The notes under the pieces were generated by a model. The model worked only from the letters and a program-made list of their open reading frames with translations, was not told where the DNA came from and did no database searches. From Phallusia mammillata (Eukaryota): a stretch of 64,000 nt of DNA. The DNA is taken from NCBI GenBank assembly GCA_965637545.1, contig OZ281494.1, forward strand, positions 30,690,001-30,754,000, given 5' to 3'. Made by a program: the position numbers and the translations under genes. Of the stretch, positions 25,423 to 46,300 are shown piece by piece (the first letter of the stretch is position 1; each line of letters opens with the position of its first letter).

Positions 25423-26559
25423 TCACCATAGCAGTAACGGTTTTCCATCAAAATCTGAAAACAGTACAAGAGCGTCCAGCAAAATCAGCGCATCATAAGT
25501 ATATTCCGGGTTTAAAACGGATAGAATGATTGACTTGATGTAATCTGCACTCTGAAGTTCGTCGTACTCGCTAATACTCTTCTTCGAGCTGATTTTTAAC
25601 ACGCCAAATTTGTTTACTAGCATCTCTGAAAATATCGGATGGTATTTTGCGTTGTAACCAGTGTTGTGTTGTAGAAAGCGAAACGCATTGTCTCTTTTTT
25701 CTTTCAAAGTTTTTCGCTTATGCAAGTCGACCGTTCCGGTTTGGAAGTCCTCGGTGTATTCCATTATCTTCTGTGTAACATTACGAACTGTGAAACCGTA
25801 CAATCTCTTGCGATGCGAAAATACGTGTTGCAAAATTCTTCTGTCAAGTTGGAAAGCAATTTCTCCGACTAATCTATGTCCGACATCATTAACTTTTTCC
25901 TGATGTTTTCTGCGCAAATGGTTTAACAAAAAACATTATTTTACAGTCCATGAGAAATATTGTGCACATATTCATTATTAAATCGAAAGAAGCAAATATT
26001 AACCTTGAAATATCTGAGTTTGGGTGGTGTTCTGTAGTCTGGTATTTAGGACTTTTTAAGTTAGGTAAATTATCTTTTTTCCACTCTGGCGAAATTGACC
26101 TTTGTGGCGTTTGTTGTTTATGTGTACCATCTTTCAACGGTAAAGATGGTTTTGGTGGTTGTTTAGGTAAGGTAGTGGGAGTAAAAGATTGGTCATCGGC
26201 ATCCAGTGAATCTTCTGTGTCTGCCGCATTGTCGAAGGGAAGCGGTTTGAAGCTAGTGTCTAAAAAACTAATTGGTTATTTAACTTGCCAGTTTTACTAG
26301 GACAATTAAAAACAGTAGAAAACTTACGGAAAAAGGATACTTCGTTGTCCACACTATCATTAAACTGATTGGGTTTGGTTATATTTACAATCTTTGCTTT
26401 TGGTGTTGCGGCGCCATCCATAGAGTCTTCATCGCTACGCTGTTTTAACGAAGTAAATGACAACCTTTTGATTTCTTTCTCTAGTTTTTTGTTTTCTTCA
26501 ACCAGCTTTTGCACTTCTATTTCCGGAGTCAGCTCATTAAAGCTTCCAGAAAAATCCAT
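25423..26559 (-). CDS. SPATC1L: Speriolin-family protein (SPATC1/SPATC1L-like), 324 aa
   Basis: Exons 26559-26328, 26259-26004, 25909-25423 in phase. N-terminal coiled coil EVQKLVEENKKLEKEIKRL; C-terminal speriolin signature LVGEIAFQLDRRILQHVF...RLYGFTV..., ending DGKPLLLW. Confidence 0.8.
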
Positions 26560-26791
26560 GTTCACTTACTCCATAAAACTAAACTTGTTGAGACAATACA
26601 GCCAAATTGTTTTGGTAAAAATATTAGGCAAATAATGCCTCCACAGTCAAATAAGTTGCTTTATGATGCAACAATTGTTGTCAGGACTGATTGGTAACAC
26701 CAAAAAATTGTCTTAAAATCTTCTTTATTGTGTTTTATTGCAGCTGGTGACGTAAGTGTGCGCAAGTTGCAGCAAATCAGCTGATTGCCGT

Positions 26792-26803
26792 TGCGCATGC
26801 GCA
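26792..26803. promoter_or_regulatory. Perfect NRF1 palindrome in the divergent speriolin-like/HAPSTR1 promoter
   Basis: TGCGCATGCGCA in a CpG-rich patch between two head-to-head start codons 808 bp apart. Confidence 0.5.
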
Positions 26804-27366
26804 GTGACCTACTTGGAGGTGAGTGGCTGAAAGCACATCAACGGTTTAATGAATGGCAGCGGGTGTGACTTGCTTTGCGATTGTTTCGCGCAAAAAGAAC
26901 CACATTACACCATAACTTTTAGGTATATTGAAATAATGATTAGTTCAAAGTAATCAGATTGTTTAGGTAATGTCTTTTTGGTAATCTCGACTGCTAATAG
27001 TAACATTTACGCGTTAGTTGCTGGTTAGGCAAAAAGCCAATATTTAGACTTCAGACATTGTGTGTGTTGTGCTTTCAGCATATTTATTAAATATTTAGGG
27101 AATTTTACCGGTTATGACAGATTTTGAGTCAATATAGCTGACAATTTTGTTAAATTTAGTTTTATGGGTAACAGTTTAAATGATTTTTTTTCCAGAAAAG
27201 CCTTTGTTGTTAGTTTGATAAAATAAGAACAGCACTGAATACCGGTGGAGAAGTGGACCAATTCAAAAACAACTGCTTTCATTTTGGTACTTGATTCACC
27301 TATTTCATGTAGCTAAGGAAATTAGAAAATCAAAACACTTTTAATCAATGAAAAGAAGGCTGTACA

Positions 27367-30300
27367 ATGGATGATCATTCATTGGGAAAGTCTGGGAAGA
27401 ATTTTGCCAATGGAGCAAAAGATTTACAGGATCACAGCCCTGGAAAATGGTTCACCAACTGGGAAGAACAATGTCTTTTAGAGGTGTGTATTTCACCTTG
27501 TTTCAGCCATTTTTTGTGCCAAAGTGTATTTTTTTTACAAGCAAATTGCAGCAAATGTTGTCAATGAAAACACAATTCATAGGGAAGTAACTTTTAAACT
27601 TGCACAACAAAAATTGTTTTTTAATTTTAGTTGCAATTTCTTAATTGTAATGTTATATAACACATTAACTAACAGTTGTGTTTACTTTGTTAAAACTGCA
27701 CATAGAATGTTTTTTTTGTTTCTTTTTCATATCTTCCTACATGTTTAACAAAGTAGGAAGAAGACTAGTAATATTTTTATGCCATATTCAGGCTGATAGC
27801 GAGCCCTCATCTGAAACAAAATATGCAACCGAAACAACAGAATTGGAACAGAAGCTTTGGCTGTCCTTTCAAAACACTGCCTCTGCAATTGCACAACTGT
27901 ATAAAGGTCAGTAATGCATTACATAAGCAGTCACTCATGTATTTAAAGCAGATACAAACCAAAAAATCTGCAATGTTGTTGCAATGTATCCAACGTTTTC
28001 ACCTCACATTCCATTTAAAAATTTTACTCTTTTAGCAATAAATGCAATACATTCTGTACTGTTTTAACAAATTAGAAAAAGTGAAAACATGTACCTAGAA
28101 CAGTATGTATTTAACAACAACATAACTTGCAGAAACACAATTTTCAGTATATTACGGATAAAATGAATACTGATACACTTGGTTTGTCACATTTAGCTGT
28201 TTAAAAGTTTAACCCTGTTTTTGGTTTTAGATCGTGCCCAAGGCAGAGATGAACTATGGGTGTCTTTTCAAAGTGCAGCCGAATATGCCACCAATATGTA
28301 TAGAGGTAAATTGACTAATTTGAGGTTGTAAAAATGATTTTAATGTAATAACTTTGGAACTGTGTTAACTTGCTAGTGAAATGTGTAACAATTTGACTGC
28401 TTATGTTGTCTGTAATAGGGTGATAACTGTTTCTGTACATTTATACATATTGTTTTATGATAGTTAATAAGGCACTTTTCACAGGTTTGGTATGTTTTGT
28501 AGATCTTAGACCCTTAGTGATTGCAATAAGATTGTACTTTTAAAAAACTCACTGAACAGGATGTTCAAAGCAAAAAATGAAACTTCAGTGCTGCAGCTAA
28601 ATTGTTTCTTTACTTTTCACTTCTAGATGGATTAGATGGCTCAAAAAGTATTTGTGAGCGAGCAATACAATGTGGCTACAGCAGAAGAAATAAAGAAATG
28701 CTTTCTTGGGCGAAGAAAAAGCGACGACACATTAGGTAAGCGTAAAATTTTTTATTCTCCATGTTGTTTTTATGATTTGAGTGAAAACAAAAAAATGTTC
28801 ACTAACAATTGATGCTTGAAGGACAATTGTTTCATTGAAAATGAATTGTGTTTCAGGAGAGAAGACTTAATAGGATATTTATGTGGACGGTCTCCACCCC
28901 ATCGGTCGTCACGACCCAGCTCGTCGCATTCAAAGTCACAAGATGGCAGCAGAGAAAATCGACTTCAAACATTTCATGATGCTGTTTCTATGAACGGTAG
29001 GTAGCATTACTGATGTTTAAATAGAAAGTGTTTTTGAAACCATTTAAAAGTATAAAAAAGATCAGGCCTGAAAATGAATTTTGGTGCTGCAAAACAGTAA
29101 ATACTTTGATTGAGAAAGTTTTGAAGTTTTGTCCTCACTTCAAAAAGTTCACAGCTTAAGGTTCCTTCTGTTATGTTCAAATGGAATTTATAAACACATT
29201 TAAAAGTAGAAGACCAGGCTTGCAAGGCAGTAACCACGGCATTTGAGATGCTGGTTTCTAGACAGTTTTGTCCATTTTTCATAAAACTCTTTGGCATTTG
29301 TGTTTTGTAAGGTACAATAGTCTATTGAGCATTCCAGTTTGTTGCGTAATAAGACGTGCAACCAAGTAAAACAACTTTCTGTGGAGAATAGCCAGATGCA
29401 TATTTAGATAACCAGGGATTGGTGAAGGTTCAAGGTGTGGTTTCAAAGAAATAATGGGCCCTTTGATATACAGCCTCCAGGCATGCATGTTGGTCTGTGA
29501 ATGTTGGTAATTTGTCAATTGTGAAAAAAACGAAGAAAACCACACCTGTCGCACTTTTTGCAAGATTTGAAAATGTGAAAGGTTGTTTTTAATTGTGTGT
29601 TGCAACAATCTTTTTTGCTGATACAGTGAAATTAAAAATGCTTCTCTTGTGTATTTGAGTATTAAACATAATAAGCATATGTTAAATAGCTTGTTGTTAT
29701 TAAATAATAATAAAAAGCTAATTAACTGTTCAATAGTGATTATAATGGCAAAAAATAATTTATGTTGTTTTACATGTGAAATTTCTTTTCATGAACTGCA
29801 TTTTAACTGTTTTGTAAAAATGCATGTAGTTTTATGTCAGCAATTTTTCTTTCGTAAAATTGTTAAGAAAAGGATTGTATTTTTGTAACGACATAATCAG
29901 CATATGCTTTATGTATGTTACAGGGTTGAATGGTGCAATGGCAGATATCAGTTTTGGAGGTGACTCACCATTGCGACAAAATTCTTCTGCTGCAAGAGCT
30001 TGCCAACAAGGTTTTGTTTTTTCATTGTTGGCAGCATTTTAGAACACTGCCCAGGTTACAATGTGGGAGCATTAACAATTAGGCAACTTGATTCTGAATC
30101 CAGACAATAACAATAAAATTTACAAGTATATGGAGTAGTTATAAAACTTTGTGTGCTACAAAGCTATCATCGGTATGTCACCTTTTTTTAGTTTTGGCCC
30201 ATCCCTACTATGTTGTGTCAGATTTCATGTTGCTAACACGGCAAAAACTTGCACAAAGACAACTTTTGCTTTTATTTATCTTTGCCACATCACAAAAGTG

Positions 30301-30464
30301 CTATTCCTTTTGTTTCAGGTTTTCATCCTGATTTAACAACATTTCTGTCAGAAGAATTTCAACGACGGAATTTAACAGCAGGGGCACGGTCAAATTCCCC
30401 TTCACGAAAGCGAGGGGCAACAGCACAAGATGCTAAACCTTCTTCACCTAAGCGTAGGAAATAA
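27367..30464 (+). CDS. HAPSTR1: HUWE1-associated protein modifying stress responses (C16orf72), 262 aa
   Basis: Exons 27367-27483, 27792-27906, 28231-28305, 28627-28735, 28857-28996, 29924-30010, 30319-30464 in phase. Motifs WFTNWEEQCL, QKLWLSFQNTASAIAQLYKDR, LWVSFQSAAEYATNMY, WAKKKRRHIRREDLIGYLCG and DLTTFLSEE match the human protein. Confidence 0.93.
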
Positions 30465-30698
30465 AACTCAACTTCGAAAAAAATGTGTACATACCTTTTT
30501 TTGTGCTTTTATTTAAACATGTGTGCCGGCTGGAACCAGCTGTTCGTACAGTTCGCATGCACATTTTGCATCCTGCAACTTTTTTATTTTATGACAAAAA
30601 ATATTGTTTTTGTGTTTCGACCCCAAAATTACAAACGTTGTGATATCAATGCTGTTGTATTTTATAACAATAACATTTGATTGTGAAATAGTTAAAAC

Positions 30699-30895
30699 CA
30701 GTGATTCCCTTGCCTTTGACATATGGTTAGTAAAAGACACTTTAGCTATGTGAATATGACCTGTGAAGTTGATAAAAGACCCAATTTTAAAAGATCTGTG
30801 CATAGTTTAGCTTTCACTATGTACTTTATTAGGGAGGAATGAAAATGGTTTGGATTGTTAAGGAAGGAATTCACCTAAAAGGTTGGGAACTACTG
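30699..30895. mobile_element. hAT-type MITE (family also at about 49763-50002, 54058-54265, 57921-58239)
   Basis: Degenerate TIR CAGTGATTCCC / GGGAACTACTG; shares the internal TGTGAAGTTGATAAA...GGTTTAG...ACTATG block with the 49.8 kb and 54.1 kb copies. Confidence 0.75.
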
Positions 30896-32669
30896 ATTTA
30901 AACTTTTTGGGCTTGATACTTAATACAGCACGAAGTTAACGAATTTTCCTAAAACCAGGGGTGCCTAGCATAAGCACTGTGGTGACGGTATTTTCCTATG
31001 CCAAAATGCATCGCATTGAATAGGTCTGTTTAAGATTGGCATGTGGTTTTTGGTGTCGCAAATCTGCTGGAACTGAACCTCTATATCTCAGTCAAACCCT
31101 TAAAATCATGATCAAAATTTTTCAAACTGGTGTTTTACCTGTTAGTGCTGTAGAATTACTCTTTTTTTCTCCTGAACTGCCAATTGAATTTGTCAAAATT
31201 TGGGTGTGGCATCTACATTGTAATTCAAGAAAACTTAAAACACATTTCTGACTTATCATACGTACATTTCATTTTCTTAAAAGCCCGAAATGAATGACAA
31301 TTCAACTGTATTACTACTGGATATTTTTGACATAGAACCTTACACCATTATATTTGTGCCTCATAGTATTGCTTGGACTGCCATACGTTAAACAATAGTA
31401 TCATCAGACTATTTAAAACAACAACAATGTGTTTTTGATGCATGTTTGTGTTTTTGCAAAACAAAGTGTTTCTTCATTAATAAGTGTGTAACAGATGTTT
31501 TAGTCTACCATGTATTGAGTATCGGTAGCTCAGGTATGTTGCCAGATATTGATGCAGTAATTTAGGAAGCTTCTAGTTTATGCTATATTCATAAACTAAG
31601 TGGCAAAATTGCAGCAAAGTGAATGCCAACCATTATACATAACTACCAAGCGAAGAAAACTGTACAAATAAATTAGCACACATTTTTCATGCAGGGTTGC
31701 ATAGTCGGATGATGTAAAGTTTGACTCATAATTCTTTGTTCCAGTAGAATGCAGACTCCTAACCATGATTCTAACCCCTTGGGGTTCCCATTTTGGTTTA
31801 TATATATGATAAAAAGTATTAGGCATGGGTCAAAATTTTCTGTTTGCACCGAACATCTTGTGCTAATGTTCAGCTGAATACACTCGATGCATTGTGACGA
31901 CACAAACATTCCCATTTCCATGCTGCGTTTGCAGCTTTCCAATTCCCCTTCTAGCTTATATCACCAGCAGCATATCAGGCTATACAGGCCCCAAAAGTAT
32001 CTTTAAAGGGCAAACCTTCTAATGTGCTCAAGCCAACTGGACAATGCACCTTGGACTGTAAGAGTCCGATAAAAAGTCTGGCTCCTTGCACGTTTCACTA
32101 TGACTCTCTTTCTACCAAGAAACAGAATTGTTCTCTAGTATCTCAAAATACTAACATTGAACCATAGGTTTATTCCCAATTAAACAAACACATACAAAGC
32201 GTGAACTTTTTATAGCAAAACAAAACAAAAAATGCCAATTGGAGCAACTAGAATTTGAGTGACAAATATAACATGAAGTACTACATCAAAAACAGTCGGC
32301 TAAAGTGAAGAACAAAAATAGAATAAACATTTTAGGCTGCAAATTACTTTGTTGGAACACCAACTGGAAATTGGCACTTTTCAGGATCCTTGCTTTTTTT
32401 AAATAGGTGTGAAGACATTTGAATTCAATTTTTGTGGCAAAGCAGGTAGAAATAGTTCTGGTGCATTTGACATCTTCGAAGTCATATTTCAAACAGTACC
32501 AAAAATTCACAGCATTGCACAAGAGCCTGCAAATGAAAACCATTTGTTAATAGATAGCAGATTACAACAATATCTATAAACTGCAAATTTTATTCAGCTT
32601 TGACATTGTGAAAAATTGTTTAAATGCTGGGGTTCAAGGGTCGAACCTAGCAGTTCATACAGGATACAC

Positions 32670-33192
32670 CAGGGGCCGCCAACCTTTACCACTCTGATCA
32701 ATTTCACATAGTAAAAAAAATGCTGGGAGCCACAAAGCCGTTTGCAATTTCAAATGAAATGCCACTTTTTTGTCTCCAGCATTTTGACTTTTTGTTGTTG
32801 GTTTCTTGCATATTAGGCACACATACTTAACCGGTCTCGTCAGCAGTAAAAGCAAATGAAGCGCTCCACGTAGCATTGAATGTTTTGTTTTCTTCAGACG
32901 CTGATTTTTTGTTTTATGCGTATTGTAAGCCAGATATTAACAAATTGAAACGTGCCGTCAGTTTGCCTCTTTTAAAATTTACGTTTCATGGTATAGACGC
33001 GGTTAATTGTAGCTACTAAGAGCGGGTTTGCTCATGTTATTGCACGACAATTTTTGGTATTTTCGACATTTGTGTAGAGCATAATCGTCACAGAATGTGT
33101 ATTCAAAACATTTGATAATTTCAAAAACTGAGCCGCATCAAAGGGATCAAACAGCCGCATGCGACTCCGGAGCTGCGGGTTGGCGACATCTG
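32670..33192. mobile_element. hAT-type MITE
   Basis: TIRs CAGGGGCCGCCAACC / GGTTGGCGACATCTG; perfect TSD GGATACAC. Confidence 0.88.
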
Positions 33193-33604
33193 GGATACAC
33201 CAAGTTGGTCTCTTTATTTATGGTAAAAATATGGCAGTTTATGATCACATAACTATCATTATATAAAACAAAAACTGCCAGAGAACTTGACGTGGAAACA
33301 GTCTATTCTAGACTTTCAATATTCATTGTTTGTTTGTTTCATTTTTATCCTCCATTAAGCCTGTTAAATCTTTTTTCTCAGGCAGTTGGCAACTTCAGTT
33401 TAATCCAACCTATCGCAACCACTGGGTTGGAGCAACGACCGATATAGGATTAGAATGCACAATCTTGTTAACACAAGGTGGCTATGCCAACATTTAGGCC
33501 ATCTTGACAGTATGTTAAGTGTTCCCAACACATATCAGTCAAAATGTATTTGCAGCAAATTACCTGTGCTGCTTGTTTATGATTAAATGCTGAAAAATAC
33601 AGGC

Positions 33605-36526
33605 TCATTGCATTTGCAGGCTTCTTTCTATTGCTTCTCGCATCTCTGCATCCATACTATGTGCATCGCTATGGTGATGACCAATGGCCTCGTTGGAATG
33701 CCTCATTAGTTCTTGTAGTGTAGACCAACTGGCAGATTGGCTCCAGTGAGTGGCTAAATCGTTATCATGATTGCGGACAGCATCAAGAAGAATGCCCATC
33801 TCATCCTGTTAAATAGTTCGAAGCTTAAGGTTTTGTGCAAGTAATGGTATACGCCAAACAAAAGAAATATTTTTACAAGTTGGAATTGTGATATTATTCA
33901 CACACTTTTTGCTTGCATAACTTGCAAGTGCTGTGTGTTAAATGAGTCCAGACATTATGCACAGACTATTTTTTTAAAACAAAAACAACAATGGGTTGGT
34001 TAATAAGGGAAACCAAGTTTTGCATCTTTCATCTGCACTTTCTAGAAACTGGGAAGCAGCCCTAAATTATTCATACACTACTAGCGAAACCCTACAATAT
34101 ATATAGCTGTAAGTTCAAGAAGGTGTAATTTCAAGGTTTGCATCAATAGCTTTAGTTAATTATATCGTCACTGAATACATTTCACAAACAGCAAAAGTGT
34201 AACAAAATTTAAAATTGACCAAACTTAAAAAATGAGCATGCCAAAAAGTTGTGGGAATCTTGCAAGGCTGCTCAGTGTGTTCGCATTTGGGCAAAAAGGC
34301 AAGAAAATTTATTTAAACAACAGTTATTTAAAAATTTGCAAGAAAAAGCAGACTATTCTTGAAATTTGCAAACAGTGTACTTTTATGTCCTTACCTTTAG
34401 AGAAATAGTGTCATTAGTAGCCAAATAGACTAAGACATGAAAATCGGACAATGCATCTACAAATTTGTCAGCAGGGAATTGACTGAGGTATTTTGAAAGA
34501 GCTGACAATGACTGTACTTGGCCAACAGCATCACGATTGCAGGCGGGAAATTCAGAAATACTGTTACTGCAAGTAAACTGGGATTCTCTGGAAAATGCTG
34601 TAGGGACCTGAAGAAAATTGACGAGAGCTTTTGTTTCAATATATTTTGAGTAAATCCAGACTCTTTCAAGAAACATACACAAACAGAAGGTTATAGCCAT
34701 TAAAAAGATAAATATTCAGGAGACTACTTGCCATGCAGAACCTGATAATTTTTTATGATTCACCATGGCTTTTCCAGACGTTAGCAGCAATTATCTATAC
34801 TATAGAATACCATTTTAGTTAATCAGCATTTTACCCATTTCTCAAACAGTGTTGTTTTTACTTACATCCAGTAGAAGATATTCAAGAGGTAGAGGTCGAG
34901 CCAATTTAGTGACTTCATTTCCATAATCATCCTTTTCTTTGTAATATACATCAGCTACAAAAAGTTCTGGCGAGCTTTCTCGTACATAACCCAACTCAGG
35001 GGCATCGATCGTTGGAATTAAACAATCATCAGCAACCAATGACATGCCCTGATTGGAAACCTTAATACAAACATTAAGGAGAGGTTTGTATTTTCATCGC
35101 CAAAGGTCTAATCACTTTAGTCATGATATTTTTGTTGGAACAAAACAAATGTTCAGTGAACCTCAGTTAAACCGGATTTGTTTATTCCAGATCTTTACCT
35201 TATTCAGACAAAACTTGAGGTACAAACGGTTTGTAATATGGTAAGGCTTTAACTAATCTACATCGGTTAATCTATATCTTCGCCTAATGCGGACATTTTG
35301 TTTTGGTCTAAACCGGTCAGGATTAACCGAGGTTTACTCTATACACTTTCCAAATTATTTAAGTGAGAAACTTGCAGTTGAATAGATAAAGCTTTGACAA
35401 AAAAATATGATTTAGAAAACTTATAGTATTGGCGCAAACATACCTGGTAGCCTTCGAATGAAATTTGATAGTCTTTGTCTCCCGAAACTACAACAGTTGT
35501 AAATTTTGACCCATATTTTCCATTTGATGCCAGTCTACAAGAATTCAGATGTTTGTTTTGCAGATAAGCAGCTGTTATGCATTCCTCGGCTGTCAAGAAA
35601 TGTGTTTCAGAGTTCCGGAAATTCTTGACAGTTCCTTTGCTACGGTCCTGCGCTATTAAGTCTGTTATGATCCAACCAACTTTTACGAGACCCAATTTGG
35701 TAGCTATTTCATCCACAACAATTTGCATCGGATCGTCATGAAATTGCAACGAGTTTACCGAACTGTCTTGAGGAGGCTCGTAAATTGCACATACTTCTGC
35801 TTTTATGCCAAGTGGGACCTCTGAATGTTGTGTATATCTACCATAAAGGTAGCCCATTCTTTGATGCCCTGATACACGCCAGAAATTGAGAAACCTGTCC
35901 ACTATATCCCGATTTTCAAACATAATATTGTCAATGTGTCGGTATTTTTGCCGATTTAGCGTCACTGCTGATGGAAGGTCAACCACAGAGTGCTTGGTCC
36001 CATTTGTACTCATTTTACAGGCAGCACGGAAGTTTTCTAGTTTAAAATACTTTCCTTTGTCAACCCCGGCCGTTTGCTGCCTCATATATGCATGGAATGA
36101 CATAAATTTAATTTCTTTTCCCTTCAGGTAAAGTTCATCCCAGGGCTCTGTTGGTAGGTCATCAATCTTAAAAATTCCAGCAGCACTTTTGCTTTGTTTT
36201 ATTCGACCATCCTCCTTCCATAATTGTAAGTCAATTGGGTCTTCAACCACATTCTGTGACTCCTGTGACTGAGAAGAGCTGGGCCGAGAGGAGGCTCCAT
36301 TTGAAGAAACCAAATAGAGCATATCGCCATGGTTCAATTTTGCTGCTTTTAACTTTTGTCTTACATTTTTTAAAAGGCCTTTTTTGTTGCGATCTTGGTA
36401 AAGCTGCCAGGAAGAATCTTTCAGCTGAAACATATCCTCCACTCTTTTGAACAGAGTCGCAACAGTGTCATTGTTTGATAGTTCAATTCGCTTTGTTCCA
36501 TCACTTGATTGAATTCTTATAATCAT
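33605..36526 (-). CDS. NPLOC4: Nuclear protein localization 4 (p97/Cdc48 cofactor), 563 aa, atypical domain content
   Basis: Exons 36526-35444, 35060-34866, 34607-34395, 33805-33605, all phase 0. UBXL start MIIRIQSSDGTKRI...LNHGDMLYL; core motifs MSFHAY, TLNRQKYRHIDNIMFEN, GYLYGRY, AIYEPPQ, VGWIITDL, FGSKF-like YGSKFTTVV, FEGYQVSNQ, ARPLPLEYL, DFHVLVYL. Confidence 0.95.
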
Positions 36527-38161
36527 TTTGTCTGTCAACTCTAGTCCTACACAAAAAAAGTTAAAATTTACAGAGGTCTTCTGGCAATTGTACTTTTATA
36601 CCAACGTTTCGTTGTCCTATATAGGTCGCATTCATCAGAGTAGGTAACACTGAATGTGCATTGCACAGTGCACGATAACAAGTTTACGATTTGTAGCATA
36701 TTTGTATGGGTGAATACGGATTGTAGACACAGAGTAAGCAGATGAAAAGAATCACGTTCGCTGGGATCCTTGCAATATTTTTTCTTGTAATATGCACAAA
36801 TTTAGGATTTTGACGTATAATTCGCAAAAAATGTTGTTCGCGCAATTTCTTTTTTATTACATAGCACAATTAATTTATGTGTCGTCACAGAACATAATCC
36901 ACGAAAATCGGTCAAGCGCATCAGAACCTTACGTTTGTCACGCTTGAAATGACATTTTAAAGTCGAACGTTGTCATTTAGGGAGGTAATCCGGCTTGGCA
37001 CAAAAAAGTTCCTTCAATACATATTTTTCTCTGACACCTAGTTACCGACAATTTAGGACTTTTCAACAAAGTTTGCCCAAGAAAATCAGCGCAAAATTTT
37101 GAGTCGTTATGAAAATAAAAAGGTATACGCTTAGGCAAAAACGCTACGTGCGCAATGGAGCGAAGCTAGTAAAAAATCGTTGTGTTAAAGTTTAATTATT
37201 CCTTATGTAGTAGACTCGCAGTCTTGCGGGAGTAACATACAAATTGCTATAATCGTTAAATCTACCTGTCAATCAAAAGTTAATCCTCCGCGCAAACAAA
37301 AAACTTTCTAAGTACAGTTACAAATACAGAGAAGCGAATTAAGCGAAATACAAACACACAAAACACGACAATATACATAAATACCTTCGGATATTACACA
37401 ATACATTTTAACCTGTAACGTACATGATACAAGTTAAAACACTCACTATCATCAAGATAATATTTCAAAGCAAAATCCAAATAGCATGACAAAAATCTTC
37501 CCACACTACCCACAGCCTTTAAACATAAAAATCATAGACTTCCGTAATATTTCTATAAAGCATACTCTTTTTTCTTATTAGAGCTAAATTTTGCAAAACA
37601 AAATAATATATTTTTTGCTAAAACTCATAATATACGATAAGATCGACACAGGGGCCGGTCCAACCGAGTTCTGGAGGGTTTGGACTTCAGTTTAAAGAAA
37701 AACTCGTCTTCGGGTCTCGTCTGACTTTACACTGGTGCTAATTTTTGTCGTAACTTTACCTTGGTAAGTCAAAATATTGGACCTAATTTGGGCTTTATTT
37801 TAACAACGCTTCTAGTTTGGATCGGTCTTGTACACAGGAGCAATGTAACGAATCTGAACCAAAACCAGTTTCTTTTGACGTTGATTCATTGACTTGATGT
37901 TCAGTGTGGTGACAAACATTTAGCATACTTGTGGACAATGTGAATTATTTCATAAACGTCAAGGTCTCTATTTGAGAAAATAATTCTAATTGTAAAGTAA
38001 AGTCAACGGCTAATTAAAAACGTTTACATTAAAAATATAACAAACTGGTTTGATTCTAAACAATATCACACAAGCATCGTGTTGGTCGACATAATTTTAT
38101 TGACACAAAGTACATGTAACAAGCCATGGCACAGGCGTGATGATTTCGTTGTCTCCTTGTA

Positions 38162-38794
38162 TCCTAAAAGAGGCCCAAAACAACACGTTATTTCATTAGG
38201 TAATTGGAGTACTTTTCCAACTCAACACGACTTACATGCTGTTTTGGTTTCACAGCAGGACTTGGATTTGCAGCAACCACCACTACTGTCCTGTTGAGTC
38301 ACAGAGCATTTACAATCTTTGCATTTACATTGGCCGGGTGTACAAGCACATTGGCCAGTTTCTGAAAGCATTCACGACAATGTTACAAACGGACCTTCAA
38401 AAATAAACAATGCGCCCCCAAATTGGCCCCTAAACTATTTATGCACTTAACTTCAAAAAGTTTGTACAGTGTGCAACAACAAATGTTCGCACACGAGTAA
38501 ATTTGGCCACATGTATTCAAGACATTGTGGGATTCAGCCGGTTCGCACCGGTTCTATAGAACCGTCTCAACCACTTTTATGAGATCAGCGAACCGTTTAG
38601 CATTACTGGTTATTGTCAATAGACTTTTTGTAACAGAACCGACTGAAAAATATGACTTTTGTGATAAAACAGGCTGACAAAAATTTGAATCCCACCACTG
38701 ATCCAAGATATGTGATTAACTTGCAACAAGTTAAACTCCGCATAGACGTAGAGCGTCAAATCTTACCTGAACATTTGCAGCTCGCAGGATCCAT
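38162..38794 (-). CDS. MT: Metallothionein (51 aa, 12 Cys if intron 2 is spliced; 55 aa, 14 Cys if retained)
   Basis: Exon 38794-38767 (MDPASCKCS) joins 38361-38236 in phase to give MDPASCKCSETGQCACTPGQCKCKDCKCSVTQQDSSGGCCKSKSCCETKTA. A GTAAGT donor at 38235 and TTTTAG acceptor at 38164 create T|GA. AATAAA at 38096-38101. CxC/CC pattern with no aromatic residues. Confidence 0.9.
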
Positions 38795-38894
38795 CTTAAC
38801 AATCTTTTGTCTCTTCAATATGTAACAACAGTACTGTGCCTCAGTCCCATAGTATGAATAAAATATACACAAGATGTAAGGAATCTGGGGTGCA
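38411..38894. promoter_or_regulatory. Three metal-response-element core matches (TGCRCNC) at the MT gene
   Basis: TGCGCCC 38411-38417 (+), TGCACAC 38469-38475 (-), TGCACCC 38888-38894 (-). Two lie in intron 1 and one about 100 bp upstream of the ATG. Confidence 0.5.
38523..38700. mobile_element. MITE copy inside MT intron 1
   Basis: Reverse-complement match to 4252-4430, ending GAATCCCACCACTG. Confidence 0.85.
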
Positions 38895-39005
38895 CAATGA
38901 CGCGTCGATTTCAGGATGTCAGTCGTGATATCACTGGCTTCCGTCCCCAACGATGTGTGTTGGTTACTTACGAAGCTTGTGCAGGACTCAAATCATGGTT
39001 TAGTA

Positions 39006-39831
39006 CAGCGGTTCTTCACCTTTTTTTGTCCACGCCCCCCTAAGGTATTTGTCGGGCACTTTACGCCCCCCTGAAACAGGCAAAAAACGACAGTTTTTTC
39101 GAATACTTGCAGCAATAGAACTACCAGAAGTTTCCCTTGCCTATGTTGTAAATCAGGTATCATTTAATTACAGGCCTGGGGCGTTAACGATTGTGCAAAC
39201 ATGCAGAATACATTTTAGTAACAATTTTGCCTGGTCTAACAGGATTGCATAAGTATCATCCAAAAGCAGTTTGTTACGTCACAGACAAAGCAAATAATAG
39301 TAATTGTTTGCGAACAATTGCCTTTTTAGTTCTTTGTGGTAGATAAACGTACAATAGTTGGTATGTGACACTTCTATATTTTGCATAATTTTACAATTAA
39401 ACAGCGGCACAATCTGAATACAAATTAGATCGTGGGAAGACATGAACCCTTTGCGGTCTCGTCAAAGTCGCCTCGCGAGATCCAGTTTGGGAAAGTCTGC
39501 GTCAGGGCTTGTAACCCATGCGGCTTTTGAGCGTGATTAATAAAATTATCCGGCCCGCAGTTAAAAAACTTGGTGACCCCTGTTTTAAACTGACAAACTG
39601 AAAACTTTGTCACGGATGTCAATATTCAAAATTTGTCTTACGCCATAAGGTAATGCATTATAATATTCGTTTGTTTTAAAAACGTATGTGCTCACAAACA
39701 ATACATTACACTTGCAAAATTAATTTTAGGGGGAGGTGAGTGTACAGTTAAATATTTTTTTATTTAACTTTTGGCTCACGCCCCCCTTGGAAATGTCTGG
39801 CGCCGCCCTAGGGCGAATTTGCAAAACATTG
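39006..39831. mobile_element. Composite hAT-MITE remnants between MT and SDR42E1-like
   Basis: Starts CAGCGGTTCTTCACC. Shares blocks with 45288-46238 (TTACGTCACAGACAAA...AACAATTGCCTT; CAGGGGTCACCAA inverted). No clear TSD, so the ends are approximate. Confidence 0.55.
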
Positions 39832-40367
39832 GGGTAAGAAATACCAGCGGGCTTTCAACCGTTTAAGTATAAATATTTTTTATATTGCAAATCTTATAAA
39901 AGTTAAAACAAAATTTTAAAGCGTTTTAAATTTAAAAACGAGCTTGTAAATCCACTACAGTGACGCTGTAAATCTGTCAATCAAATCTCATACCATGGCG
40001 AGAGGAAAAGAAGAAAAAGGCAAACTTTTTTTCCGTTTTGTCTCGTTTTAGCGAGGACTGATTCAGTCTGCACGCGAAGCAGAAGCAGGCGGTTAGTTTG
40101 TTCTGTGTCATTATGCAGCGATTTGTAATCGATTTTTATGCGCGAAGAGAGTTCTAACGTGACCTAATTCTTTTGCCTTATTGTTACTGTTCAACGAGGC
40201 TAGTGTATTAGATTTTAAGTGTCTGTTAAGCTACACATTTTCTCGGGACGAATTTGAAAACGGTTTTAGGTCGCAGCAGACGACAGAATAATTTTCTGTG
40301 TTTTTTTGTCAGTGTCCATTAAACTCTAGATTGTGTGCCTTGTCGAGAAAAGAAGCAAGCTTGTGAT

Positions 40368-43300
40368 ATGGGGGATATTTTTAATGCGGAGGAAATAGGG
40401 ATTCCTAGAGAATTTACCCTCACCACAGGCACAAATGGACACAGGTGATTTAACATACTTTTTCCATAACTCATCCGTTTTTGTGGTAACTTTAGACAAG
40501 TTACGTTTGTTAGGAGCAAACTAAATTTGTATTTTTAATATTTTTTTAACTCTGTGTTTTTAACTTTTCATTTTTTTTCCAGTCGAAAGCTGAAATTTCT
40601 TATCACTGGGGGTTGTGGATATTTTGGCTTCAGGCTTGCAAGAACTTTACATCATCTAGGAGCATTTGTTACTATTCTTGACATTCAGTTACCCAAAACC
40701 ATAGAAAAATATCTTGACAACCGACTAAAGTTCATGCAGGTAATATTCAAATTGTGGCTTAGATTATTACCTAATCCAAAACCAAAAATATCACCTAAAG
40801 ATGAATCTAAATTCTGTTATATCCATTCTGGACAAATTTTTCTTTAAATTTTGTTAGTGTACAGCCATTATTAGATTTGGTGCTAATTTAATTGTATTTT
40901 TTCTCTAATTTTCAAGGGTGATGTAAGAGATTATTCTGCTGTCCTTAAAGCTTGCCAAGATATTGATTGTGTTTACCATGTTGCCTCATTTGGACTCAGT
41001 GGAAAAGACCAGGTATGAATAATTAAATTTTAATCCTTTTAATTTATAATGTAAAACCCTTCGAGAATTTTATATTTTGTTTTGTACAAAACAGGCTTTC
41101 TATGTGACAGTTAAAATGCAAAACAAACATCTTTTTTTATACTGTTTTGTGAATAAATACATGTAATTGCTACAACCTAAAAATGTATGTTACTGACTGA
41201 TATTTTTTGTATTTTTAGCTTGATAAGGGATTGAATGAAGCTGTAAATGTTGGAGGAACTCAAAACATCATCAAAGGTAACACACCACAATTTGTATGTA
41301 CAATAAACCTAATAGCCTACTTTTATGATAATTTTGTAACCCACATTTCATGCCTGTGACATTGGTGGTTGGGTTTTTTAGCAATCTAATTTACTGTCGT
41401 GCTACATTGGGTTCCCATGGCACCAAGGCATCATAGACTCATGCATTTTTAATGTAAACAGCTTGCCAAGAATGTGGGATAACCCGTCTGATCTACACAA
41501 GCTCGTACAACGTGGTCATGCAGGGGAAAGAGATATGTAACGGCACAGAAGACCTTCCGTATGGCGACCCGGAAAAGGTGCTCATTTATTATCACGGCGT
41601 AACTTCTGCTCAAAACCCCGCAACCATAGTAACGATAGCGCACCAGCCCACATAACAGCCTGTAACATTGTCAGTTAAATAACCATGGAAAGATTAATGC
41701 CTTCACTTAGGTTGAACTGTAGTGATTAGTATTAAGACTGCATGTAAAATCGCAGAATTAAAACTAAACCAGTTAAAACATGTTAAAATATTGTTGTTGT
41801 TTTTCCAGAAAAAATGGTGGTAGAAAAAATGTAGAGCGATTTTAAGATACAAATTTGAAAAATTTAAAAGTAAATTCATGACCCACTTTTTTACCGTTTT
41901 TATTACACTCTTTAAACCATAACAAATGAGAACCAATTATCTATGTACGCAAGGCATTGGACACGTAACCCAAATACGAGTATAAGCGGGCAATTAGGCA
42001 CTGCTTGAAACACTCTATTTTCCCCTAATGCCCTTTAATAACGTATTACTGCGCGCAGATGGTGGATTATTATTCCTCGACAAAACTGAGAGCGGACAAG
42101 CTCGTAGTGAAAGCAAACGGATCGTTGGTAGCCGGTAAGTGTTCAACCTAATTGCTAATCGAAGCAAGGATTTATTGAGTTTCATTCATTACCCTTGTAG
42201 GCCATTGCCGTAAGACGACAAAGCAATTTGCTTTGCGGCTGATTGGTTCGTATAGCTTTGTGGCCGTTGAAATGATATGGCATATTTTTGATGTTGTGTA
42301 GGCAAAGTTTTCGTACTATAAGGGTCACTACAGCTTGCCAGGAAGAAATCTTAAAAACAAAATAACTGTGTGTTTTTCGAAGCAAAAACTGAATCTGAAA
42401 TGAGAGCGTATATGGTATGTATTAAACCAACATTATAAAGCTGTGGCACCAACACAGAATAAAAAAAACTGTCTAACAGTTACCACAGCTCGCCAAAAAC
42501 ACACAAAGATGTCGTTGACAGATTAACTGTGTATTTTCAGCAGATAAAAAACGAATACCAAATTGGAACGTATTTGGAATATTAAGCCAACATTTCGTAA
42601 CGTAGAACCAAGAAATTTCAACAACTTATATCAGGTCGTACAGCGCAATTCTAAACATGATTAGTTTCAGATTAGTTTATTTCCAACACCTAGCCTACTG
42701 TTTCAACACAAATTCACAATTCAGGGCTTTTATCCCCCTCTCTCTCTCTTTCTCTTGAAATTTGAAATCCAAACCGTTCTCCTTCACATAGCTGTATGGC
42801 GCAGTTTATTTCCCGACAAACAATATGCGCGATTTGAGTGCTCATTCAACGGTGATTCATTTTTGAATCATCGATATTTCATGACCAAAGTTTAAAAGTT
42901 TGCCCTGAAATCATCGCTTTTTACAGTCAGTCTTTTATCGCACCGCGAGATCGTAATATTGCGCATACGAACGTAGTGAAATACCAAAACAAAAGCGATG
43001 TTATTTTGTGCATCTCGCTGGTGCAAAAATGTAATTTGCTGTCATACATTTTCAAAGGTATATTTTGAAAAAGACATTCTAAGCGTTTTAATGTAAGTAT
43101 GGAACGATTTCATGTTAAGAAAGCTGCAAACAGTGTCTCATCAATTCAGCTGATAACAAGACATTGTATAACTTACTCCAATAACAAAGTTACACACATT
43201 AATTCTATTAGTATAAACTTCAGATAATTAAGCAAATTTTCAGTATGTACTATAAGTTTAATGTAATTAAGCATAAAAACACAACACCTTTACGAGAACA

Positions 43301-46300
43301 ATACAACAAAACGTGTAATGTTAAATAGGTCACGATTACAAGATGTTGCATAACTTTGTATGCAACTGAACAAGTCGAACCAGCTGAACTGGTGTGTGTG
43401 TGTGCTTCAACCGGCTTAACCATCCACTTCGCCACCACAATACGCCGCACTCTTATCAGCCACCACTTAAAATCGACCCATCTGTTTGGCCGCACAACGC
43501 ACGCTGTGGTTGAATGTAAACCGTGTTACTTTTATTCCCGGACGCTTATCTATTTGTTTTGTGGTTTATTTATGCTGTCAAGTTTAAATTATTATATTGG
43601 TTGAGATGATTTTGGATTTCATGCAAGTTAAAAATGCCCATTTTAATGCGGCTCGTTTTTGAAAAGTTCGCATTTCAGATCTTAACATTTTAATTGTTTG
43701 TAGGCGTTTGTAGGTCTATCAGAAATTTTTGTGGTGTATAATGACTTAAATACACGTAAAAACGCATGTGTTATTCCTAGACATTGAAAATGCCATTATG
43801 AACGATATAATCTATTTGGGAATCTATGCACATCACAATTCGTATGAACAGATCGGTGTAAAGTGTTTCTAAATCTTTTCCATTTGTTTACTATTTAAGT
43901 CCAATGCATGTTTTGTCATTTTCAAAATTGATGTCAAAATTTCTCCACCTAAATGTGTTTACAGCTAAAATAAACTGCCCTCCACGCAACAGCAAAACCC
44001 ACTTCCACAAATGCGTCTGTCCCAATAGAAAAGGAAACCAAGTTAATCATTTTCAGGATATTGCACACCGGCACATTGGCGAAGGTTTCCTTTAAAGCCG
44101 AAACTCTTCAAATTTTAACATTTGTCGATTGTTAAGAAAGATTTTATCGTTACGACTGCGTTACTTTTCGCCAGGTAGTTTTGTAATTCAAGGGCAAAAA
44201 GGTTGAAATTGTATGCACTATTAACCCGTGTCACACGATTTGAATACAATTTGTATTCATCAACCAACGTCATCTAACACCCTGAAGCGTTGTGATTACA
44301 AACAAGAACGTAACATAGATTACGCGTTGACATTTCCGCCATTCACGTTTTTGTATCAAACAACAACATTGACACATCCATGTGAAGCACTACTTAAATT
44401 TCACTGTTTCTGGTAAAGTGTCTAAAATCTACTTTTTCCATCATAACTTGTTTAACAGAACAGCATACCAAAACCTGCTATAATGTCTTGTTGCAGAGTT
44501 GTAGGTCGGATCGGGCTTCAATTTGATTAAAACGGGCTTGATTCGGGCCTGGCTTCACACTAGGCCATATTTGTGTCGTAATTTCACCCTTGATAGATAT
44601 TACTTATTCGGGTTTAATTTTCAAAAAAAATCAGCCGGATTTCGGGCTTGTACTTTCCGTTTCGTGCCCACTTACACCTCTGGCTTGATCAAACATGAAC
44701 TAATAAACAAGTCTTGTTGCCCTAATGACAGGACAGATATGGTTAGTAAGGTCTGTGCGTGCGATCTTTAAACATTTAACGTCTCTTACTGAACCCCTTC
44801 GCGGAAAAAACCCTTCGAGTAAAATTTAAACTTGTTTGTCCCTTACGGTAAAGAGGAAGCACTGTATTTTAACAAGTGTAGCCATTTATCACACGCTAAA
44901 GTATACCTGACACCGTGGTCGTTTTATTATTCAGGGGGTTCCCAGCTCTCAACGTGCTGCCTCCGACCAGCTGGTATTTTCGGGCCGGGCGAACGGCGAC
45001 ACATCGACAGAGCTGCGGTAAGTGGTTCAGCTATTTCCTTTGTGCCACGCTCGCTCAACGCGTTTTTTTCCCTGCGGTTTTATTTGAACTCTGAATTCCG
45101 AAGTCGGTTTAGTGTGTACAAAGTTTAAGTAGGATACGGGGCGTGCATTTATCACGTAACAGGTGCCTGTTGTGATGTAGAGGCCTTTTTATAACCCAAT
45201 GGTGCCCAACCCTTTTCGACGAATTTCTCCCTTAACAATTTAAAACAATCTGAGCAAAAAAATCAGAGCCAATATGTTTGTGTAGAGCAGGGGTTCTTAA
45301 ACTTTTTCGGTCGCGCCCCACTTGACACATTTATTTATTCTCACGCCCCCCTAAAAAACGTTAGCACTGATGATGCTTGTCTTGTGTTTTTTTTAAAAAA
45401 AACAACATACATCGTAGGTCCGCCTTTAAGCTACTGTCAAGTTAGTTCCAATCGTTAGAAAAGGCCACTTCAACGCTGATAAGTTGCGAAGTTTTTTTTT
45501 GCTCGGGCACTGAGCCACGTTGTCAGTATTCGTATAAACTACGCATATGTTGCCCAGAAATTGTTGATTCACTCAAAGTCAAGGCAATCTCTAAAGCGAA
45601 ATTGCGAATAAATAAAGAATGTACAGCCGACTATATACTACAGGGGTCACCAAACTACGGCCCGCGATCCCATTTATTAGGTTTGCCAAAACGTATTGAT
45701 AACTTTGTTACTGTCAAAAATTAATCTACACCTTACGAAAGTTTACTGTTCCGACATGCAAAATTAATATTACCGACTTTCATAATATTGCAATGCCCAG
45801 GATTGACCCAAAGCCAGTTTATTACGTCACAGACAAAACAAAAAGTGTTAATTGTGCGCAAACAATTGCCTTATTGTGTTACTTGTGACGTAATATACAA
45901 GCATTTCTTGTAAGATGAGATTAACTATACAATTTAATAGATTTTAAATGGTTTTTCTAAAAGATCATATCTTGGCGCCCCTATAAAAATCGCCCCGTGG
46001 GCTAAGTTTGAGAAGACAGCACTAGGGCATGTAAACTGTGCCGCACGCGCGAATAAACGTTTTCGGCCCGCAGTGGAAAAAAGTTTAGATAGTACTACTG
46101 GACATCCATTTCATAGTAATGAGCGTTTGCTTTGCTGCCTAATGAAGCGTTAACTTTGCTGCCATAATGTGCTGCGCCCCCCTTACAAACCCTTCACGCC
46201 CCCCTTGGGGGGCGCGCCCCCCAGTTTAAGAACCCCTGGTGTAGAGCATAACTACGTTTCGACAAGTACTATTGTCATCGTCAGGTCATTGGCTCTGATT

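Follow-up and report, generated by a model that had tools for sequence, protein, structure and literature searches.

An NPL4 gene whose product lacks the zinc ligands of both CHCC zinc fingers, ZF1 and ZF2, lies within a 64,000-nucleotide stretch of the genome of the ascidian Phallusia mammillata (contig OZ281494.1, positions 30,690,001 to 30,754,000 of the forward strand), referred to here as the window. The gene occupies 33605-36526 on the minus strand and has four coding exons specifying 563 amino acids. All three introns are of the GT..AG type, and the frame is open through 563 codons with canonical splice sites. An earlier note, made from the sequence alone, had identified the gene as NPL4, and this identification is borne out by Pfam matches to UN_NPL4, zf-NPL4, and NPL4 and by a phmmer search of the PDB, in which residues 2-363 matched human NPL4 chains (E = 1.9e-108).

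The domains of NPL4 were followed along the protein. The N-terminal UBX-like (UBXL) domain is present (UN_NPL4, residues 1-73, E = 2.9e-22; predicted local distance difference test score, pLDDT, ~90), and the zf-NPL4 family match is kept over the full length of the model (PF05020, residues 94-220, E = 2.3e-26). The MPN and C-terminal domains are present as well, matched by PF05021 (NPL4) over exons 1-3 (E = 1.3e-54 in exon 1). With the exon as query, the best word-search match was the UniRef P. mammillata NPL4 (100% over 563 amino acids); the spliced coding sequence differs from that entry by two substitutions only, T174A and D513N. Word-search identity was 61-68% to Ciona, Clavelina, and Styela and ~49% to vertebrate NPL4, and the identity to other animals (48-50%) is distributed along the entire length of the protein.

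The genome sequence was compared with independent runs. The genomic run X15 covered exon 1 with zero differences. Three studies supplied runs X1, X2, and X13, in each of which one contig of 2.0-2.1 kb lacked exactly the three introns and showed zero differences in the exons; these runs are not recorded as RNA and were classed as transcript assemblies by their intron-less contigs together with their share of ~0.5 of the sampled words. At a polypyrimidine-TAG acceptor (36549-36547), the X2 contig no longer follows the genome, with a 22-letter loose end at 36548. This acceptor, TTTTTTTGTGTAG/G, lies 20 nt upstream of the NPL4 ATG, and the contigs run on into ...ATTCTATTTGAATA(AG), which we take to be the ascidian spliced leader. 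This leader appears to be joined to the NPL4 mRNA by trans-splicing.

Several further features of the gene were observed. The transcript contigs depart from the genome at 33563, 42 nt past the stop codon, and continue for >250 letters more, which suggests an intron in the 3' untranslated region (UTR) with its downstream exon below 33300. A single exon carries the first 361 codons, and the three introns fall within the last (3') third of the gene; human NPLOC4 has a far higher intron count, which suggests extensive intron loss on the 5' side of the Phallusia gene. The depth of the genomic run spikes within intron 1 at 35172-35288 (~24,600 vs ~100), where numerous short contigs also terminate, and a second spike lies at 33300-33416. 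Intron 1 probably holds a high-copy dispersed repeat.

Loss of the zinc ligands and the C-terminal tail

The earlier note had placed the loss of both CHCC fingers within one exon between conserved flanks, and the alignments agree with it. The segment 35948-36208 (minus strand) encodes NPL4 residues 107-193, from GRIKQSK to TLNRQ, inside the single exon 35444-36526. In the phmmer alignment to human NPL4, notable gaps and mismatches are confined to the two Cys/His clusters, replaced by the segments given in Table 1, and the flanks of the lost fingers are ~80% conserved. The ZF2 segment is shorter than the canonical finger by a net 5 residues. In a 51-sequence alignment, Cys or His stands at 0/8 ligand columns in Phallusia NPL4 and in 20 other tunicate-type sequences; all 30 non-tunicate animals (vertebrates, amphioxus, molluscs, and arthropods) have C-x-H-x5-C-x2-C and C-x2-H-x8-C-x2-C, minor variants aside. 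The sole retained Cys (AACK) aligns to a Cys that is not a ligand and is replaced by Val in amphioxus, and the sole His (KHS) is variable among tunicates. Judged from these columns, the finger sites would be unable to hold structural zinc. The G-[IMV]-F-K-x-[DEN]-x-L core of the ZF1 segment is kept in 21/21 tunicate-type sequences (P0001-P0021).

The third zinc module, NZF, is absent from Phallusia NPL4 too. The tail of the tunicate protein occupies the place of this ubiquitin-binding finger of other animals, and every full-length ascidian-type sequence ends there in [DE]-x-[DE]-[ML]-x-x-A-I-x-R-S-[LI]. A Pfam scan gave no Zn_ribbon_RanBP match in the Phallusia tail; the tail of a mammalian sequence, P0053 (Manis javanica), gives one. 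In every full-length tunicate sequence, Ala and Ser stand four residues apart after acidic residues, the variants being [EQ]AI.RS[LI] in the ascidian type and [EDK]AI.RS[LM] in a long-branch group described below. The consensus of the ubiquitin-interacting motif (UIM) is acidic-x-hydrophobic-x-x-Ala-hydrophobic-x-x-Ser. The tunicate tail fits the same pattern as the UIMs of S5a/Rpn10, Vps27, Hrs, and the epsins, is in Phallusia a single predicted helix (residues 550-562), and is called UIM-like here.

Table 1. Coordinates of the NPL4 features and neighbouring genes in the window
Feature	Position	Strand	Basis or place
NPL4 5' UTR and putative trans-splice acceptor TTTTTTTGTGTAG/G	36527..36548	-	X2 contig end, genome sequence
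NPL4 exon 1, residues 1-361 (UBXL, ligand-less zf-NPL4, most of MPN)	35444..36526	-	ORF, donor GTATGT, Pfam
ZF1 replacement KQSKSAAGIFKIDDLPTE, residues 110-127, net 9 residues shorter, no Cys/His	36146..36199	-	Alignment
ZF2 replacement FRAACKMSTNGTKHSVVDL, residues 166-184, 2-residue insertion and 7-residue deletion, four ligands gone	35975..36031	-	Alignment
NPL4 exon 2, residues 362-426	34866..35060	-	Pfam NPL4 E = 2.1e-17; joint in three runs
NPL4 exon 3, residues 427-497	34395..34607	-	Pfam NPL4 E = 1.3e-10; joint in three runs
NPL4 exon 4, residues 498-563 and stop, without NZF	33605..33805	-	Alignment, transcript contigs
UIM-like C-terminal helix DAEMREAIERSLQMQ	33608..33652	-	Conserved in full-length tunicate sequences; predicted helix 550-562
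Cys-rich open reading frame (ORF), 49 amino acids, 13 Cys, C-x-C and CC motifs, no aromatics	38225-38371	-	1.7 kb upstream of NPL4
Speriolin	25423-25929	-	Window
TAPR1-like/C16orf72 exon	27678-27914	+	Window
3-beta-HSD/SDR42E1-like gene	40.5-45.1 kb	+	Window

Distribution among tunicates and other eukaryotes

All 21 tunicate-type sequences, which include Ciona intestinalis, C. savignyi, Clavelina lepadiformis, and Styela clava and represent the three ascidian orders, lack both fingers and carry identical indels. An exhaustive profile search was made over 1.84 billion cluster representatives, and the best 150 sequences were surveyed; among the 122 that cover the finger region, both CHCC sets are intact in 77 and both absent in 13, six of them from the tunicate clade. 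In a quick maximum-likelihood tree the tunicate clade has an SH-aLRT support of 100, with a long-branch group nested within it. A word search from one member of this group, P0165, gave eight more relatives, and ten members were obtained (P0165, P0179, P0191, P0250, P0294-P0300). The finger ligands are absent in each long-branch member, in whichever finger region is covered, and seven members (P0165, P0191, P0294-P0298) terminate in MDDD[VI]-x-x-AI-x-RS. One member is located on a metagenome contig on which ORFs are dense, with gaps of 54-60 bp. The long-branch group may be appendicularian, and the compact ORF spacing on this one contig fits such an origin while proving nothing. Taken together, the same indels were found in >25 independent sequences.

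The other animals in the 51-sequence alignment retain the NZF, as do most in the wider survey. ZF1, ZF2, and NZF are all retained in a hemichordate, Trichoplax, rotifers, nematodes, and a fluke, and likewise in vertebrates, amphioxus, molluscs, and arthropods. Therefore, on these sequences, the complete loss of the zinc sites of NPL4 is a tunicate synapomorphy within animals. The loss is common to all tunicates sampled and ancestral to tunicates as a whole. In the library searched, no paper was found that links Npl4, zinc finger, and tunicates, and none with Npl4 was among the broader-query matches listed.

Outside the tunicates, both fingers are absent from the NPL4 of the amoebozoans Arcella and Pyxidicula and the cryptophyte Chroomonas; ZF2 is absent from that of the sponge Oscarella and of Rhizamoeba and Flabellula; and ZF1 is absent from that of Ephydatia and from a crustacean-like sequence. 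These protist and sponge proteins resemble tunicate NPL4 in that one or both CHCC sets are independently absent while NPL4 is otherwise recognisable. However, those of Arcella, Pyxidicula, Chroomonas, Oscarella, Rhizamoeba, and Flabellula show neither the tunicate indel pattern nor the UIM-like end: Arcella, Pyxidicula, Rhizamoeba, and Flabellula NPL4 end in a UBA-like tail, Chroomonas NPL4 has none, and Oscarella NPL4 keeps ZF1 and NZF. Two further UBA-tailed sequences with neither finger, P0188 and P0217, form a separate deep lineage. P0249, labelled Schistocerca gregaria, was considered as a case of ZF2 loss in an insect; its finger region resembles those of amoebozoans and its tail is UBA-like, and it is probably contamination of that assembly and was not counted.

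Plant NPL4 also lacks zinc fingers, and the D1 beta-sheet is completed instead by a strand of its UBXL-MPN linker, where the fingers sit in animals and fungi (bioRxiv 10.1101/2025.03.28.645892). According to the same preprint, finger-less NPL4s generally anchor the MPN domain via a short strand-helix motif, and the finger-less state is possibly ancestral (bioRxiv 10.1101/2025.03.28.645892). Arabidopsis AtNPL4 (PDB 9m3z) is like tunicate NPL4 in having no fingers, and it still forms a complex with CDC48, which offers a direct mechanistic precedent for tunicate NPL4. Nevertheless, the two proteins are distant (query-based TM score, TMq, 0.48; 27% identity): in plants the short UBXL-MPN linker replaces the zf-NPL4 scaffold and CDC48 is bound independently of UFD1, whereas tunicates lost the fingers secondarily, within Metazoa, and kept the scaffold. 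The distribution as a whole indicates that finger loss is recurrent across eukaryotes. The statement in the earlier note that the fingers are conserved from yeast to human is overstated, as plants, arcellinid amoebae, and the cryptophyte lack both and a sponge lacks one.

Sequence constraint and predicted fold

Constraint was measured by segment-wise identity, and not by dN/dS, because synonymous sites are saturated at 68% protein identity to Ciona. The pairwise identity of the inter-finger scaffold is 0.80 among tunicates and 0.75 among other animals, and past ZF2 the value is 0.79 in either group. The replaced loops have pairwise identities of 0.45-0.47, compared with 0.13 for the neutral-like linker between UBXL and the fingers. 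By these identities, the zf-NPL4 domain of tunicates is not decayed.

Residues 90-370 were modelled with AlphaFold2 using a 150-sequence alignment (pLDDT 87; predicted TM score, pTM, 0.83). Foldseek matched this model to the human NPL4 chain of a p97 complex (9yrc_G) with a TMq of 0.89 and E = 9.5e-35, and to fungal Npl4 chains with TMq values of 0.84-0.89. The order UBXL, zf-NPL4 scaffold, MPN, and C-terminal domain (CTD) is shared with human/vertebrate NPLOC4 (PDB 9yrc, 7wwp) and yeast/Chaetomium Npl4 (6chs, 6oa9, 6jwh). Compared with the human and fungal proteins, tunicate NPL4 is without ZF1, ZF2, and NZF, its loops are shorter, by 9 and 5 residues, and its C-terminus is UIM-like. Disorder of residues 108-194 had been considered, as pLDDT there was <50 when the full protein was modelled with a mixed alignment of 51 sequences; this was a shallow-alignment effect, the domain reaching 87 with 150 sequences.

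Proposed working of the adaptor and cause of the loss

We consider it probable, at roughly 75%, that this is the single orthologous and expressed NPL4, that all of its zinc sites were lost in the tunicate stem lineage, and that it works on as a p97 adaptor. Both CHCC knuckles would have been shortened in that lineage into loops free of Cys and His, and a UIM-like helix would have displaced the C-terminal NZF and presumably assumed its ubiquitin binding. Purifying selection would hold the UBXL domain, the inter-finger helical scaffold, and the MPN domain and its ubiquitin groove, as well as the CTD, so that tunicate NPL4 may still serve as part of the UFD1-NPL4 adaptor of p97/VCP. The main tether to p97 is likely to be the contact of UBXL with the N domain together with the SHP motifs of UFD1. 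By analogy with plant NPL4, the G-[IMV]-F-K-x-[DE]-x-L segment that remains may keep a main-chain (beta-strand) contact with the D1 strand normally bound by the fingers. The fingers of human NPL4 bind D1 by backbone hydrogen bonds to the strand F265-I269 (PMC7785736), and because the contact runs through the backbone, zinc is in principle not needed for it. Such an adaptor would presumably function independently of zinc and copper.

Several observations weigh against this reading. The replaced loops have only moderate pLDDT (62-75), and the monomer model shows no hairpin. The long-branch tunicate group does not retain the GIFK-core Phe, and therefore no single docking residue is universal. Human NPL4 mutated in its putative zinc finger aggregates in cells (PMC7072750), so the loss of ligands is not trivially tolerated and compensating changes have to be assumed. 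Unlike the UIMs of S5a/Rpn10, Vps27, Hrs, and the epsins, the Phallusia tail goes undetected by Pfam, which reported no UIM for residues 530-563 at E <= 10, although the model is very short and HMMER filters drop weak matches; the label UIM-like therefore rests on the consensus pattern. Finally, no second NPL4 turned up, but no complete genome search was made, so a second canonical copy could lie elsewhere.

The cause of the loss is a separate matter. The loss could have been an adaptive purge, in which all three zinc-thiolate sites were removed as labile to copper, other metals, or oxidants, leaving a p97 adaptor insensitive to copper and to the disulfiram metabolite CuET; the earlier note had inferred a zinc-independent, possibly metal-resistant adaptor. 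Some ascidians, Phallusia included, are metal accumulators, and all three modules are gone, with the NZF swapped for a zinc-free motif instead of deleted, which looks like a selected replacement. In addition, Cu2+ inhibits human p97-UFD1-NPL4 by oxidising the ZF1/ZF2 cysteines and locking the complex (PMC7785736). As Cu2+ acts via these cysteines and the finger mutant aggregates, a zinc-free NPL4 would be expected to escape. However, the loss spans all sampled tunicate orders and the probably pelagic long-branch group, and is not tied to metal accumulators; fingers have also been lost in plants, amoebae, a cryptophyte, and sponges, which have no obvious common metal ecology; and tunicates are fast-evolving generally, so that drift after compensation suffices.

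The earlier note had further pointed to a metallothionein gene beside NPL4, and this adjacency was not substantiated. The neighbour in question is just the 49-residue Cys-rich ORF, metallothionein-like by composition only. It has no Pfam match and no word-sharing homologue, its atlas feature score to the metallothionein cluster is 0.83, under the trust level of 0.9, and an ORF scan found no comparable Cys-rich ORF between NPL4 and SDR42E1 in Ciona. The evidence thus leans against the metal-resistance idea; we regard an adaptive purge as unlikely, and metal adaptation is no more likely than compensated drift in a stem lineage that evolved fast. If the purge did take place, tunicate p97-UFD1-NPL4 would be a natural copper/CuET-insensitive unfoldase, and tunicate loops placed in human NPL4 could separate finger docking from drug sensitivity.

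The gene might instead be a diverged paralogue with a derived or partial role, a canonical zinc-finger NPL4 being located elsewhere in tunicate genomes. The Phallusia genome has been searched only incompletely, which leaves some room for such a copy. However, the top matches contain one NPL4 per named tunicate (Phallusia, two Ciona species, Clavelina, and Styela), always without fingers, and the 48-50% identity to other animals runs over the whole length. Gene order is also conserved: Speriolin, TAPR1-like/C16orf72, NPL4, and SDR42E1 have the same order and relative orientation in Ciona intestinalis (AP043577.1), at the locus of the 68%-identical protein, as in 25423-45128 of the window. The Ciona proteome atlas lists KY21.Chr11.652 as NPLOC4 with values at eight embryonic stages, located between C16orf72 and SDR42E1 and with a count of 7, which we read as peptides (PMC10951915 supplement). 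This is the single NPLOC4 among the proteome rows listed and corresponds to the syntenic finger-less gene; therefore, the zinc-free NPL4 protein is made in Ciona. A hidden canonical copy is thus improbable on the sequences searched, clearly more so than an adaptive origin.

The least credible explanation, an assembly or annotation error at the fingers or a neutrally evolving pseudogene, has no observation in its favour and can be set aside almost entirely: the DNA run and the three transcript assemblies are base-identical, the 563-codon frame is open and its transcripts correctly spliced, the indels recur in the independent sequences counted above, the replaced segments are more conserved than the linker, and the Ciona protein was detected, so that the unexpressed or neutral copy envisaged in the earlier note is largely excluded.

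As to significance, in both fungi and humans ZF1 and ZF2 are seen as anchors and 'seesaw' pivots of the p97-UFD1-NPL4 unfoldase, and they are also a proposed target of the copper released from CuET. A chordate subphylum with an NPL4 free of zinc sites is a natural experiment, and it suggests that the fingers are dispensable in an animal context, extending the result on finger-less plant NPL4 to a secondary loss inside Metazoa. The conserved replacement loops could be used in chimeras to test whether copper/CuET sensitivity resides in the fingers.

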